Positions 32,486 to 36,839 of a stretch of 64,000 bases of DNA are shown piece after piece; position 1 is the first letter of the stretch, and each line of letters opens with the position of its first letter. The stretch covers positions 186,001 through 250,000 of the IMG/VR virus record IMGVR_UViG_3300034072_000758; one strand, 5' to 3'. The notes under the pieces were generated by a model. The model was not told the DNA's origin and ran no database searches. It saw only the letters and a program-made list of their open reading frames with translations. The translations under genes were made by a program, and so were the position numbers.

Positions 32486-32794
32486 ATGTCATACTTTCAT
32501 TTCAACAATCTCACCCCGGCTGAAAACGAACGCTTGTCCATGCTCATAGAAGAGTTCTGTGAGGCCGGTCAGATTATCGGTAAGATCGGGCGGCACGGAT
32601 ACGAAAGCTATAATCCGTATGATGCTGAACCGGAAACTAATCGCCAGCTTCTTCGCAAAGAAGTTCTTGACGCTTTAGGCGTAATCGCTTTAATGGTCGA
32701 GCGTGGTGATATGGCTGCGTTTTCCGATGAAGAAATCCAAGCCTCCAAGGTCAAACGCGCCTCAAGGTTCACTCACCACCAAAACGAAGAATAA
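32486..32794 (+). CDS. MazG-like nucleotide pyrophosphohydrolase
   Basis: ERLSMLIEEFCEAGQIIGK..RKEVLD (EExxE...EvxD pattern). Confidence 0.7.
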   Translation: MSYFHFNNLTPAENERLSMLIEEFCEAGQIIGKIGRHGYESYNPYDAEPETNRQLLRKEVLDALGVIALMVERGDMAAFSDEEIQASKVKRASRFTHHQNEE

Positions 32795-33195
32795 TGCTCA
32801 CCTACGAAAATGTCATAGACTTACTCGATCATCTTCCGCTTACGAAGCACGAAGGCGAACATGGGTTGTTCTATTATGATTTTATTGATGACGATCTGGC
32901 ATTCGAATCGCATTTCCTCTTTACTAACAAGTCACGAACCGGAATGCAACTCACTTTCGCTTATAGAGGGTTAATGATCCACGGGCGCATAAGTATTTTA
33001 GGCACCGTGAATATAATTAACGTTTCGGCTGAAACCCTGAGCGCGTTCCCAAACAAGTTAATATCGGTCGGTGGGAACGACTATATAGTCAGTCATCCCA
33101 AGAATTTCTGGATCAACATTCAACGTGAGAATGTTCAAGAGGATGAAGTAGACGAACGTTTGATCTCTCTGATGATAAAGTATGGCTCGTGCTAG
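32794..33195 (+). CDS. CT-motif family small protein
   Basis: Ends VQEDEVDERLISLMIKYGSC. Confidence 0.85.
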   Translation: MLTYENVIDLLDHLPLTKHEGEHGLFYYDFIDDDLAFESHFLFTNKSRTGMQLTFAYRGLMIHGRISILGTVNIINVSAETLSAFPNKLISVGGNDYIVSHPKNFWINIQRENVQEDEVDERLISLMIKYGSC

Positions 33196-33572
33196 ACTTC
33201 CAGACCGTATGTAAAATTCTTCATGGCAAACCATACAAGACAAGTATGTCGAGGGACGACGAAATGACATTTCGTCACGATGACCTGAGCATACATGTTA
33301 CCTATCGCGTTTCGATTGGTGGAATGGAAACGATAGGTATTTTCTACGATATAAAATTCCGCGATGTATTTTTCCACGGGCTGATCGCCGAAGCTCCGCT
33401 ATTTCACGAAACCGATGTTCGATATAAAAAAACTAAAGTGACCAAGCTCGCTATAGGTAATCATGACGCATACCCGGTAATAGAAAAAGGATTCTGGTGC
33501 GAAGTCAATCCAGCACTTACACAGGAAGAGGTTGACGAACTGGCGACGGTCATGCTACTTCTGTATTCATGA
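33189..33572 (+). CDS. CT-motif family small protein
   Basis: Ends LTQEEVDELATVMLLLYS. Confidence 0.85.
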   Translation: MLDFQTVCKILHGKPYKTSMSRDDEMTFRHDDLSIHVTYRVSIGGMETIGIFYDIKFRDVFFHGLIAEAPLFHETDVRYKKTKVTKLAIGNHDAYPVIEKGFWCEVNPALTQEEVDELATVMLLLYS

Positions 33573-33904
33573 CATTATCATTTGATACCATTTGTTCTAT
33601 TTTAGACCGAACCGAATTTCATAATAAGAAGTCGAGTATAGGTGGGTTTTTAGTTTCATATGATTGTAAAAGTCTTAACGATCTCTATGTAAAAATCTCA
33701 ACACCTAACACCATCATAAAAATAGAAATGACGTATTCTAAGATTTCACTATATACAGGTGTATGGCGCAAAATAACTTTAGATTATGTGCCAATTATTT
33801 TATATAATCACGATGATTGTGAAGCAAAAGTCCACATAGAAAGTGATCTTCCGCAAGATGAACTTGAGGAAGAAATTTTACTGCTAATTATGAATTATGT
33901 GTAA
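33569..33904 (+). CDS. CT-motif family small protein
   Basis: Ends LPQDELEEEILLLIMNYV. Confidence 0.85.
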   Translation: MTLSFDTICSILDRTEFHNKKSSIGGFLVSYDCKSLNDLYVKISTPNTIIKIEMTYSKISLYTGVWRKITLDYVPIILYNHDDCEAKVHIESDLPQDELEEEILLLIMNYV

Positions 33905-34826
33905 ACAGCGGACCTTGGATGAAAATCTTGCTGTCTTCCTTGTACAACCCTTTATTCATCTGAGCCATCACATCCGGGGTCATATGGCGTCCTCGAACTT
34001 CACGCTTCTGACCATGACCGATGATGTGAACCTCTACAGGAATATCCCCGTAAAGCCTCTTGATGGCGCGCATACGGTTGCGACCTTCATGACCGACAAC
34101 ATGACCTTGTTTTGAGTAATCACCATCAGACCATTCGTCTGGGAATGCTACGAGAAGGAACGGTGCGCCAATAGCTTCACCATCCTCAAGCTTCTTCTCG
34201 ATCTCATAGCTCGTATCGAAACCCCCGGAGAGAGCCAATTCGAGAAAGACACTAGGCTTCATCTTTACACGAATGCCTCGATAATCGATATTGGCATTAT
34301 AGCCGGTTGCGCCAAGTCCATAAACATTATCGTATGTGAGGTCTTCTTCGAGCATATTGACAACTTTGACTTGACGAGCGGGATAGAATGGAACGTACAC
34401 AGTCCCCGGATTATGATTTGTATCATCATAAACCGAAAGCCCATCAAAACCTTTACTGATCAGTAATTTCTTGAATTGGTCGTTATCCGAGACGTAATCA
34501 GCCAAAGATGTGTAGGCATCTTCACTAGCTTCATAATAATCATCAAAGTCTTTTCCGGTCAATTCATTGTATGCCGAAACCAAATCATCTTCTTCGGCTG
34601 GGCGTTCTATTTTCAAATAAGCACAATATATTTTATCGCCAAATTCCTGAGCGGTTCTCTTATTCCCGGTCCACCAACCAGATGCGAATTGATCTATGTT
34701 TTTTCCTGTACCATGATAGCAGAGAAGAGGTTCTTCATTATGATCTACTATTTGACTATTTCCAAACCATGACTTGATGTCATTACCTATGATCTCATCC
34801 AGTTTCATATGATTTTCCAATAGCAT
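33888..34826 (-). CDS. ADP-ribosyltransferase-like (polyvalent-protein type) domain plus ParB-like domain; putative head-internal protein
   Basis: WFGNSQIVD..PLLCYHGT..AYLKIERP..FDGL; linker MLEED; GHEGRNRMRAI; late promoter upstream. Confidence 0.7.
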   Translation of the reverse strand: MLLENHMKLDEIIGNDIKSWFGNSQIVDHNEEPLLCYHGTGKNIDQFASGWWTGNKRTAQEFGDKIYCAYLKIERPAEEDDLVSAYNELTGKDFDDYYEASEDAYTSLADYVSDNDQFKKLLISKGFDGLSVYDDTNHNPGTVYVPFYPARQVKVVNMLEEDLTYDNVYGLGATGYNANIDYRGIRVKMKPSVFLELALSGGFDTSYEIEKKLEDGEAIGAPFLLVAFPDEWSDGDYSKQGHVVGHEGRNRMRAIKRLYGDIPVEVHIIGHGQKREVRGRHMTPDVMAQMNKGLYKEDSKIFIQGPLFTHNS

Positions 34827-34844
34827 TTCAGACAGTTGATAAAC

Positions 34845-34852
34845 TATTTATA
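34845..34852 (-). promoter_or_regulatory. T4-type late promoter
   Basis: Exact TATAAATA on the minus strand. Confidence 0.7.
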
Positions 34853-34869
34853 GTTTATTACCATGAATA

Positions 34870-35440
34870 GTCTTTATCCCCCCACAGTAAGAATACCAGA
34901 ATTTAGGCGCAATTCGCCTATTGTCCGTTTTCTCACTGTAGGGGGATTAGATTACCACTCGGTATAACAATTACGAGGCTGACATGAGGCTTACATGTCG
35001 GATCAAGCGGACTCCCGGTCTCTTGATCGCAACCATCGCTAATCCATGAACATCTGAGAGTAATACACATTGAAGTGAGAAAGGGTTGTTCGACGCAGTG
35101 AGGATAGCTTTCGCCAGTGTCTTTTTCGTCAAGTCCCAATCCTTACAATCAGCGCAGAAGTCGGTTAGGAAGTTAATTTCCAGCAACGCCATCAAATCTT
35201 GTTATTTCGTCTGACCAGATAGCGTTCGGCCATTACGCAATTACTCAGCGCTGGCCGTCTTTTTATGATCCGTTCATATTCTTTCGAATATCGGTGGAAC
35301 CGTGTCAGGGTGGGGTCTTCCCTGTCGATAGCCGTTCGACTGATCTGTCTCATGCGGTGGGTCATGTTCCCCACACAACGTTTCGCCCCGATGTCAAGGG
35401 CATATACATCTGATCAATGGTCACTTGCCACAGTGATACC
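34870..35440 (-). ncRNA. candidate structured non-coding RNA
   Basis: Stem 34877-34893/34930-34946 with an inner hairpin; hairpins 34981-34999, 35001-35028 and 35227-35257; ATATTC-GAAA-GAATAT tetraloop on the minus strand at 35276-35291. Confidence 0.4.
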
Positions 35441-35455
35441 CAAGTATATTTTGAA

Positions 35456-36181
35456 TCAAATTAAAGAGTCAATTTTTAGATTCCTATATTCGGATAGGTT
35501 ATTATACGCTCGTTGTTTCTTTGTTCGTCCATAATTTCTCCAATATTCGAGAAATTCCTCTTCATTTTTGAATATAGGTGTTCCTGATCGAAAATCATTT
35601 ATTGATCCTGTTATACTACCTATATTGGTGGTGTTACCACTACCGGCCTTATCACCGGATATTTCCCATTTTTCTCTGACAAATATTTCTATATTATTGT
35701 ATGGTAGTTCTATATAAGATATATCGTCGGTGCGCCAGCAACATTCGGTATTTACATCGACTCGATTATAAACAAATCCTACTACCAAATGAGATACATA
35801 CTCATTAAAAGGATACAATATATTTTTATTTGGAGTTTTTTCATTCATAAAGCTAGTATAGCTACCTAATGTATATGAAAATTTATCCTTGTTATTTCGT
35901 CTATAGGTAGTCTTTATATCGATTGCTATATGTTTTTTATCTTTGTGGAAGAATGTGAAATCTGGATATTGATTTTGTGTTTCGGCATCTTTGAATATGT
36001 AGTTATAGTCACCTGCTATTTCTTTCAACGTTTCTCGCGTTACCAATTCAAATACAGTTGAAAGCACTTTAGTATCTGTGCCAAGAGGTATTACTGTTCC
36101 ATTTTTTGCGACGAAGCCGCAAATGTTGTAATCGCTTAATCGTTCATTTATGCGGATGGTCAAGTCATGTATTAATGTCAT
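35456..36181 (-). CDS. type II restriction endonuclease, EcoRV family
   Basis: Collinear with EcoRV: PLGTDTKVLSTVFEL, QNQYPDFT, IAIDIKTTY, TLGSYTSF, AGSGNTTNIGSI, EFLEYWRNY. Confidence 0.95.
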   Translation of the reverse strand: MTLIHDLTIRINERLSDYNICGFVAKNGTVIPLGTDTKVLSTVFELVTRETLKEIAGDYNYIFKDAETQNQYPDFTFFHKDKKHIAIDIKTTYRRNNKDKFSYTLGSYTSFMNEKTPNKNILYPFNEYVSHLVVGFVYNRVDVNTECCWRTDDISYIELPYNNIEIFVREKWEISGDKAGSGNTTNIGSITGSINDFRSGTPIFKNEEEFLEYWRNYGRTKKQRAYNNLSEYRNLKIDSLI

Positions 36182-36224: not shown

Positions 36225-36839
36225 TTAATGAGCCTCGAAATAGCTCTTTATTTGTTCCTTGCTCCAAACAATGTAGAAATTGTGTTCAGGAACAATTACA
36301 CCATCGTAAGCAGTGAACTTCAAACAATTCTTCAAAAACAAAGCTGTATCGTCTCTGTAGAAATCATTACCCAACATATTCAGACCACGCAAATAGCTTT
36401 GACCAACATAACCTTTGATAGCGGCAGTAATGACCTTTTGCTTACCCTCGTATTCCCAATCACCAAAGTTCCAGAGAGTATCTTCCAAGTCCGGCGCATT
36501 CATGATCAGCTTGGTGATAACTGCGACCGGAAGGTTTTTATTGGTATCGCCTCGATCATCAACAATAAGGGGTTTCTTTATAGACAAGAAAGACGGACGA
36601 ACGTTGCCGCTATCATTTTCACCCCCGGTGTACCCACCAGCAGCATCGGGGTCACCCGCGAAATAAATCCCCGCACCATACATGTCGTTACCGGTCCCCA
36701 GCTTATTGTCATCGAAGTCGTGGAACGAATGAGGGGTGCCGTGGAAAACCATCAACGGTGCGCCGTTCTTATCTACGACCTTCGATCCTTTAAACCAAGT
36801 ATCAAACTCATTGGAATATAATTCAAACAATCTCATCAA
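36225..36839 (-). CDS. ADP-ribosyltransferase-like (polyvalent-protein type) protein
   Basis: MRLFEL start; WFKGSKVVDKNGAPLMVFHGT..YGAGIYF..FLSIKKP..YDGVI. Confidence 0.75.
   Translation of the reverse strand: MMRLFELYSNEFDTWFKGSKVVDKNGAPLMVFHGTPHSFHDFDDNKLGTGNDMYGAGIYFAGDPDAAGGYTGGENDSGNVRPSFLSIKKPLIVDDRGDTNKNLPVAVITKLIMNAPDLEDTLWNFGDWEYEGKQKVITAAIKGYVGQSYLRGLNMLGNDFYRDDTALFLKNCLKFTAYDGVIVPEHNFYIVWSKEQIKSYFEAH

Follow-up and report, generated by a model that had tools for sequence, protein, structure and literature searches.

Analysis of the window, a 64,000-nt stretch corresponding to bases 186,001–250,000 of one 516,805-bp virus record, showed that a giant phage carries a family of large structured RNA genes that is real and had not been described before. 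Four paralogues document it, one of which lies in the window; their expression is untested and their function is unknown. Paralogy of the copies, covariation of their helices, the strand of the RNA, a promoter consensus, the absence of coding potential and the absence of membership in any known family are shown. The reading favoured here, with a confidence of about 0.55, is a new class of structured RNA, transcribed on its own and acting in trans; for this reading, transcription, transcript ends, action in trans and function are all inferred. Coordinates below are those of the window unless the genome is named.

The phage record has a 127-bp terminal overlap and a GC content of 45%. Its large terminase is nearest to those of Agrobacterium phage Atu_ph07 and Sinorhizobium phage Phosso, with 52% amino acid identity; relatives of this protein, 52% identical at most, were found in Atu_ph07, Phosso and 25 IMG/VR contigs. 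The phage is an Atu_ph07-like giant phage, the host of which is probably an alphaproteobacterium. The gene of a Ros/MucR transcriptional regulator (genome 88,531–88,992, minus strand, Pfam E 1e-45), located in a GC-rich patch just upstream of the paralogue c3, fits such a host. The terminase large subunit is encoded by a single 532-aa ORF in the present phage and is annotated in two pieces in Atu_ph07 (record 79,548–81,739; the tblastn match is also in two pieces).

Whole-genome self-search revealed that the element of the window is repeated, and a profile of the first two copies, c1 and c2, recovered two more (nhmmer). The copies are located at genome positions ~220,836–221,471 on the minus strand (c1, the copy in the window), 511,747–512,436 on the plus strand (c2), 89,548–90,275 on the plus strand (c3) and 358,094–358,733 on the minus strand (c4), the last three lying outside the window. 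The covariance model R1, built for the 5' domain, found exactly four copies in the genome, with E from 1e-30 to 1e-35, and no others. Copies c1 and c2 are 73% identical, while c3 and c4 are far more diverged and recognisable mainly via short invariant blocks; with identities of about 50–73%, the copies are old. On the RNA strand the invariant blocks are UGAYCAGAUG, AUGACCC-N6-UGAG, AGYCGWAMGG and UAACCGAYNUCUG, and further AUCC(G/U)C, GGGGGAUAAAGAC and GGUAAU; two composite invariant blocks are each found once in every copy and nowhere else in the 517 kb, four occurrences in all. The genes flanking the element are not related from site to site, and no neighbour gene is common to all four loci; therefore, the repeated unit is the element itself. 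Copies c1–c4 are four anciently diverged, dispersed paralogues of a ~600-nt element.

In the window, c1 lies in a 629-bp gap between two minus-strand genes, a gene of an EcoRV-family endonuclease upstream (35456–36181) and a gene of an ART-PolyVal protein downstream (33888–34826). The EcoRV-like protein spans Pfam profile positions 4–239 of 244; the ART gene begins downstream of the element, and its product matches the ART-PolyVal profile from position 1 (residues 28–156). Several observations concern these neighbours themselves. The GC content of the EcoRV-family gene is 30–33%, compared with 45% for the genome, and there was no sign of a methyltransferase gene adjoining it. A related strain (runs X3 and X4) diverges at 35483, so that the gene looks like a strain-specific insertion beside the RNA promoter. 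Of the seven ART-PolyVal matches in the genome, three are no more than ~1.3 kb away from an RNA copy, two of them at c1 (33888–34826 and 36225–36839, both on the minus strand) and one at c3 (genome 91,074–91,517, plus strand); these may be early or anti-defence genes co-located with the RNA genes, or the proximity may be due to chance. On the plus strand, at 32794–33904, three small genes in tandem (133, 127 and 111 aa) resemble one another at their N-termini and seem to make up a local family of paralogues without known function.

When the ORFs of the four copies were compared in six frames, none was conserved. Similarity between copies extends over all frames and both strands, in short nucleotide-level blocks with frame switches and indels. 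The two short ORFs that the first-pass annotation of the region had listed do exist, both on the minus strand (34971–35195 and 35192–35374; 74 and 60 aa), and it is very unlikely that they are real genes and the element is protein-coding. In favour of this explanation, both lie on the RNA strand; against it, they are not kept in c2–c4, have no Pfam match, and belong to a region in which similarity is not restricted to one frame or strand.

All four copies are preceded on the RNA strand by the sequence TTGACT, an 18-nt spacer containing GAWTC, and TAYMMT. At c1, the −35 hexamer TTGACT is at 35467–35472 (minus strand), where it overlaps the last codons of the EcoRV-like ORF, and the −10 hexamer TATACT is at 35443–35448 (minus strand); the consensus scan gave 10 of 12 matches. 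The pattern TTGACT-N18-TA[CT][AC][AC]T occurs six times in 517 kb, four times at RNA copies, and about 0.5 occurrences are expected by chance. The presence of a conserved sigma-70-like promoter of host type before each copy is shown as a consensus, and transcription from it is inferred. In a related strain, similarity stops at 35483, 11 nt upstream of the −35 hexamer, which fits the paralogy boundary. The transcription start of c1 is inferred from the promoter to lie near 35436 and has not been mapped, and the 3' end is inferred to lie near 34838. No intrinsic terminator was called at c1–c4, and no U-tract was present; since there is no recognisable terminator, read-through from c1 and c2 into downstream genes is not excluded.

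Two further observations concern the promoter pattern. Its other two exact instances (genome 232,966 on the plus strand, which is 46966 of the window, and genome 256,999 on the minus strand) appear to precede ordinary genes, judged from the sequence that follows. Furthermore, in c1 and c2 only, the −10 region (35444–35449) can pair with 35402–35407 after the first invariant block, as ATATAC/GTATAT in c1 and with a compensatory change in c2; this pairing conflicts with a transcription start downstream of the −10 hexamer and is unexplained.

One alternative is that the element is a long structured 5' leader acting in cis on the downstream gene, at c1 the ART-PolyVal gene (33888–34826). It is supported by the co-directional arrangement of c1 and c2 with the next gene, by the lack of a called terminator and by the presence of ART-PolyVal genes within 1.3 kb of c1 and c3. 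However, c3 and c4 are convergent with their downstream genes, which argues that the element is not a leader; moreover, the downstream genes are unrelated among the copies, and that of c2 has a separate promoter-like site. The leader explanation is unlikely.

The first-pass annotation, made from the sequence alone, had proposed an undescribed large phage RNA of about 550 nt at 34870–35440 on the basis of a set of inverted repeats, all of which were confirmed at the positions given for them. The claimed stem of about 16 bp was found as a pairing of 34876–34896 with 34927–34947 (21 nt, 86% complementary), and the motif TAGGCG/CGCCTA enclosed by it lies at 34904–34920. The hairpins GACATG/CATGTC (34981–34999), GATCAAG/CTTGATC (35001–35028) and CGGCCA/TGGCCG (35227–35257) also held, as did the minus-strand hairpin ATATTC/GAATAT with a GAAA loop (35276–35291); the minus-strand tetraloop GC-GAAA-GC is present within a UGGC-GAAA-GCUA hairpin. 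The statement that the region is GC-richer than its flanks held as well (44–52% GC in the interval vs 30–38% in the flanks). The proposed extent was slightly narrow, the unit being ~640 bp long including the promoter (~34838–35477). The strand, which had been left open, is the minus strand, and the paralogues and the promoter had not been seen.

The minimum free energy (MFE) of the minus strand is −199 kcal/mol vs −160.4 ± 6.7 kcal/mol for dinucleotide shuffles (z −5.8), and the plus strand gives z −2.8 vs its shuffles. Hairpins keep the same order between the invariant blocks in every copy; their arms differ in sequence, and complementarity is kept. For example, the arms of hairpin Hc are CGGCCA/UGGCCG in c1 vs UGAUCG/CGAUCA in c2, and those of hairpin Hb are AUAUUC/GAAUAU vs CGCUC/GAGCG, AUAUCCUU/AGGGAUAU and GAAC/GUUC in the copies.

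Since MAFFT and a home-made structure-aware aligner failed column-wise on the variable helices of c3 and c4, conservation of pairing was assessed by an arm-swap test, in which the 5' half of a hairpin from one copy was joined to the 3' half from another for 11 homologous hairpins. The native energy sum was −486.7 kcal/mol vs −281 ± 27 kcal/mol for permuted combinations, and none of 20,000 permutations reached the native value. The hairpin windows used in this test were picked from minus-strand folds, which somewhat favours the minus strand. With the 5' domain aligned by the model, 95% of cells are paired vs 23–49% when the partner is slid by 1–3 columns, four of the 15 pairs are changed on both sides, and the covariation score is 0.356 vs 0.132 for shuffles, a value reached in one of 500 shuffles. 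Comparison of c1 and c2 showed 24 doubly changed pairs. Projection of the whole-molecule MFE structure of c1 onto c2 gave 25 double compensatory changes vs 9–17 in slid controls; the excess is only two-fold because wrong long-range pairs and misaligned variable helices dilute the signal. Covariation was assessed on four paralogues of one genome and a few strain variants, without independent lineages. The covariance model R2, built from c1 and c2 only over hairpins Hc, Hd and He, was too specific to recover c3 and c4 and hence provided no independent test.

Two lines of evidence, G-U pairing and natural variants, place the RNA on the minus strand of the window. Reading the helices on the minus strand gives 61 G-U pairs and reading them on the plus strand 24, of which 28 and 8, respectively, belong to the long 3' hairpin, and the native hairpin energy sum is −487 kcal/mol for the minus strand vs −400 kcal/mol for the plus strand. 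Contigs from other public runs hold strains 95–99% identical to the present one. The variant 34998 T>C (X3 and X4), located in hairpin Hi, converts an A-U pair to a G-U pair on the minus-strand RNA, and for the variants 34853 G>A and 34855 T>C, located in the terminal hairpin Ht, pairing is kept only as G-U on the minus strand; all three are changes from Watson–Crick to G-U pairs on the minus strand and broken pairs on the plus strand. At 35314, 5 nt are deleted from a hairpin loop, and insertion of G after 34940 extends the pairing of a C-run with a G-run. Some of this variation may represent paralogue exchange, since one strain contig has, at the c1 locus, an apex resembling that of c2.

The c1 RNA, an inferred transcript of ~600 nt (34838–35437, minus strand), is delimited by homology with c2–c4, the MFE z-score, the arm-swap test and the G-U excess; all of its parts described below are on the minus strand and are listed from the 5' end. 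It begins with hairpin P1 (35419–35440), the sequence of which is different in every copy with pairing kept (native −8.6 vs chimeric −2.3 kcal/mol). It is followed by invariant block 1, UGAYCAGAUG (35407–35416), identified by the four-copy comparison. The first five bases of this block form the long-range helix P-alpha with GRUCA at 35341–35345 (UGAYC with GRUCA), the Y-R pair being U-A, C-G, U-G and C-G across the four copies. The segment GAUG(U) of block 1 likely pairs with the ACAUC loop of hairpin P2, forming a putative pseudoknot, and one U-A to A-U swap was found in this GAUGU/ACAUC helix among the copies. Hairpin P2 (35384–35402) is supported by the arm-swap test, and its loop ends in CAUC in all copies. 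Hairpin P3 (35352–35376) is also supported by the arm-swap test, with two of its five pairs changed on both sides; its loop (35362–35369) is GAACAUGA in three copies and ACGAAUGA in c4. The 3' strand of P-alpha (GAUCA in c1) and the invariant block AGYCGWAMGG, both from the four-copy comparison, occupy 35332–35345.

The central domain (35168–35329) is represented by five hairpins, all present in four copies with different arm sequences and giving strongly diagonal arm-swap matrices: Ha (35300–35329), Hb (35276–35291), Hc (35227–35257), with the conserved loop UGA..AUU, Hd (35185–35226), with the conserved loop RUAAC (native −14.0 vs swapped −4.2 kcal/mol), and He (35168–35181; native −7.9 vs swapped −0.7 kcal/mol). 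The invariant block UAACCGAYNUCUG (35155–35167), which has exactly four occurrences genome-wide, one in each copy, is inferred to close the central domain, probably by pairing with the region around 35337–35347; such a closing helix is present in the MFE structure of c1, yet it is inconsistent across copies.

Downstream of the central domain are located hairpins Hf and Hg (35066–35137), which show compensatory changes between c1 and c2 and the c3 and c4 homologues of which are unresolved. Hf (35083–35137) contains the inner UGGC-GAAA-GCUA tetraloop hairpin, and Hg (35066–35077) adjoins it. The next segment (35001–35045) comprises the sequence GGAU (35042–35045) and hairpin Hh (35001–35028), which covaries in four copies. 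The loop of Hh, (A/G)UCC, could form a second, putative pseudoknot with GGAU, a possibility inferred only from the complementarity of GGAU and AUCC. Hairpin Hi (34981–34999) is supported by the arm-swap test and by the natural variant 34998 T>C.

The long compound 3' hairpin (Hj, Hk and Hl; 34852–34974), supported by G-U bias and the arm-swap test, has 42 bp, including seven G-U pairs on the minus strand vs one on the plus strand; for Hl, the native energy is −42.8 vs −24.9 kcal/mol for chimeras. Its 3' strand, GGGGGAUAAAGAC..GGUAAU (34857–34883), is invariant, and the length of its apex is variable. The RNA ends with the A+U-rich hairpin Ht (34839–34858), which has no U-tract; an equivalent hairpin comes after GGUAAU in every copy. 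Across c1–c4, loops and joining strands are invariant, and helix sequences and the 3' apex are variable. Invariant loops and joining strands combined with drifting helices are typical of RNAs working via a specific three-dimensional fold. The apex itself (34884–34948) is hypervariable, with 65 nt in c1 and 102 unrelated nt instead in c2; the same 102-nt replacement was found in an X3/X4 contig running into the flank of c1, suggesting paralogue exchange or strain-level turnover.

The first-pass annotation had recognised no tmRNA, RNase P or group I/II intron core in the region, and no Rfam family matches the element. The scan of the window at Rfam gathering thresholds yielded one tRNA only, located 16 kb from c1. 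Scans of the c1 region and the c2–c4 loci at E<=10 gave only chance-level matches of 13–22 bits vs thresholds of 37–126; none of the four copies has a match at either level among the families of Rfam 15, which include GOLLD, ROOL, OLE, HEARO, group I/II introns, RNase P, tmRNA and 6S. No similar record was found by DNA comparison with 50,697 phage records (INPHARED) in near and distant modes, and no description of such an RNA was found in the literature searched. The inference of an undescribed large phage RNA is supported by the absence of coding capacity and of an Rfam match, by helix covariation in four paralogues and by the conserved promoter. Neither of two findings that had been named as refuting it, absence of covariation and conservation of the short ORFs at the protein level, was obtained: helices covary among c1–c4, and the ORFs are not kept in the other copies. 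A discrete transcript remains unshown, as no RNA-seq run contains the sequence.

Only near-identical strains were found, in soil, wastewater and two runs of 2025. Scans with patterns of blocks that are invariant throughout c1–c4 gave 0, 2 and 0 hits in IMG/VR, the two lacking nhmmer similarity; 23 hits in JGI metagenomes, all but one without nhmmer similarity; and nine hits in GTDB genomes, just two of them with weak nhmmer scores (E 0.014 and 0.82). The single JGI match with a weak nhmmer score (L017) reads as coding sequence and has none of the other blocks, and the better of the two GTDB matches (L046) lies in coding sequence; both were rejected. Model R1 found nothing in Atu_ph07, Phosso and five of the larger IMG/VR relatives. 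Motif hits in Phosso and Atu_ph07 were rejected as having no nhmmer signal, the exact Phosso hit being inside an annotated coding gene. The ART flank protein has no relative in IMG/VR. The record that holds the window is excluded from these searches, which also used strict patterns; absence means that no close family member was present there, not that the element is unique.

Another unlikely explanation is a mobile-element relic, in which a selfish element with a ribozyme, such as a self-splicing intron without an ORF, spread to four sites between genes. In its favour, the element is multi-copy and dispersed and has a size typical of ORF-less introns; it also has GNRA tetraloops and putative pseudoknots, like the ORF-less group I/II introns of phages, which likewise may have multiple copies per genome, and its 3' hairpin apex seems to have been exchanged between copies or strains. 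Against it, the genes on either side are complete and show no relation between sites, and the promoter is at the same position in each copy; unlike an intron, the element has its own promoter in front of it and complete genes on both sides. No group I/II model scores in any copy, even at E<=10, and neither a domain V nor a P7 core was found by covariance-model scan. The genome gave no match to a reverse transcriptase or TnpB profile, the age of the copies (about 50–73% identity) does not correspond to recent insertions, and none was found in the other genomes searched. A self-splicing intron in particular was rejected, the EcoRV-like and ART genes being complete, with no exon context and no match to a catalytic-core model. 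Also rejected was the guide or template RNA of a partner enzyme encoded alongside (such as the omega-RNA of TnpB or the ncRNA of a retron or DRT): no match to RVT_1 or the TnpB zinc ribbon was found genome-wide, and no neighbour is common to the four loci; the IscB and IS110 families were outside the scope of this search.

The main rival, considered possible, is that each copy is a replication origin with a primer RNA. In this scheme, the structured transcript would form a persistent RNA–DNA hybrid at the 3' G-run and the A+T-rich stretch and would prime leading-strand synthesis. ColE1 RNA II (about 550 nt) and the R-loop transcripts of T4 ori(uvsY) and ori(34) are representatives of such a primer or R-loop origin layout. 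The element resembles them in having a promoter and a non-coding transcript, here inferred, of ~0.55–0.6 kb, a folded RNA and a G-run near an A+T-rich stretch, and it resembles the T4 origins in occupying several dispersed sites per phage genome. In favour of the origin explanation, the copies are 131, 137, 154 and 95 kb apart on the circular map (the probability of a minimum gap at least as large as observed is 0.019, and that of a maximum gap at most as large is 0.007). Copies c4 and c2 are at GC-skew upshifts (97th–100th percentile), and each of the four is located at a change of gene orientation from minus to plus (72nd–98th percentile). The invariant block GGGGG(G)A near the 3' end is followed by sequence with 68–80% A+T vs a genome mean of 55%, and the promoter is of the host type, early.

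Against the origin explanation, there is no skew step at c1 and c3, so the skew signal is present at only two of the four sites; phage skew follows the direction of transcription, and the spacing test is post hoc, since the pattern had been noticed first. Over 600 nt, the invariant loops together with two putative pseudoknots exceed the needs of known primer RNAs, the structure being conserved far more deeply than in ColE1 or T4; unlike them, the element has no conserved antisense regulator RNA, and there is no biochemical evidence for it. The element is also absent from the nearest relatives, Atu_ph07 and Phosso.

The preferred reading remains that of an independently transcribed, trans-acting structured RNA. 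According to it, the interval 34838–35477 (minus strand) would be a self-contained gene for a non-coding RNA of ~600 nt, and the host-type promoter of each copy would probably provide early synthesis by host RNA polymerase. The RNA is predicted to fold into four parts: a three-way domain with a pseudoknot at the 5' end, a central domain of five hairpins that two invariant strands close, a further hairpin region with a second pseudoknot, and a long compound hairpin at the 3' end. Its core would be composed of invariant loops and joining strands, with helix sequences and the 3' apex free to vary. It is inferred to be neither a message nor a leader and to work in trans in its folded form, whether as a scaffold, as a component of an RNP or in an RNA-only assembly like those of GOLLD/ROOL. 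Against this reading, there is no expression evidence, no RNA run containing the sequence; the even spacing of the copies is left unexplained; and the function itself is a guess by analogy.

Large, intricately folded RNAs of unknown function are rare, GOLLD, ROOL and OLE being the main examples. GOLLD and ROOL are large ornate RNAs of phages and prophages, for which RNA-only multimers were shown by cryo-EM (10.1101/2024.12.08.627333). The element is similar to them in size (~600–800 nt), in being phage-encoded, in its many helices, putative pseudoknots and conserved loops, and in having no ORF, no dedicated partner gene and no known function. It differs in matching neither their models nor any other Rfam model, in not being located next to tRNA genes, in its four diverged paralogues within one genome, every one of them with a promoter of its own, and in its occurrence in an Atu_ph07-like giant phage, probably of an alphaproteobacterium. 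The pRNA of phage phi29 is likewise a phage structural RNA with an early host-type promoter, acting as RNA and not as a message; however, it is ~174 nt long, single-copy and of an unrelated fold, and there is no evidence of a packaging role for the element. A bolder reading, possible but not favoured, is that of a new class of large phage RNA, in which the four evenly spaced copies with their promoters would either be the replication origins of the genome, each making a primer or R-loop RNA of elaborate fold, or give paralogous RNAs that assemble together into a hetero-oligomeric particle like those of ROOL/GOLLD.

RNAs of the GOLLD, ROOL and OLE type were recently found to build unexpected RNA-only architectures, and the element would add to them a class from giant phages, the non-coding content of which is almost unexplored. 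The presence of four old paralogues in one genome is unusual and supplies an internal covariation and natural variant set for structure work. If the even spacing of the copies reflects origins, no origin system of a megaphage would have been defined by sequence before this one, which would also exemplify a highly structured primer RNA that is not from a plasmid.
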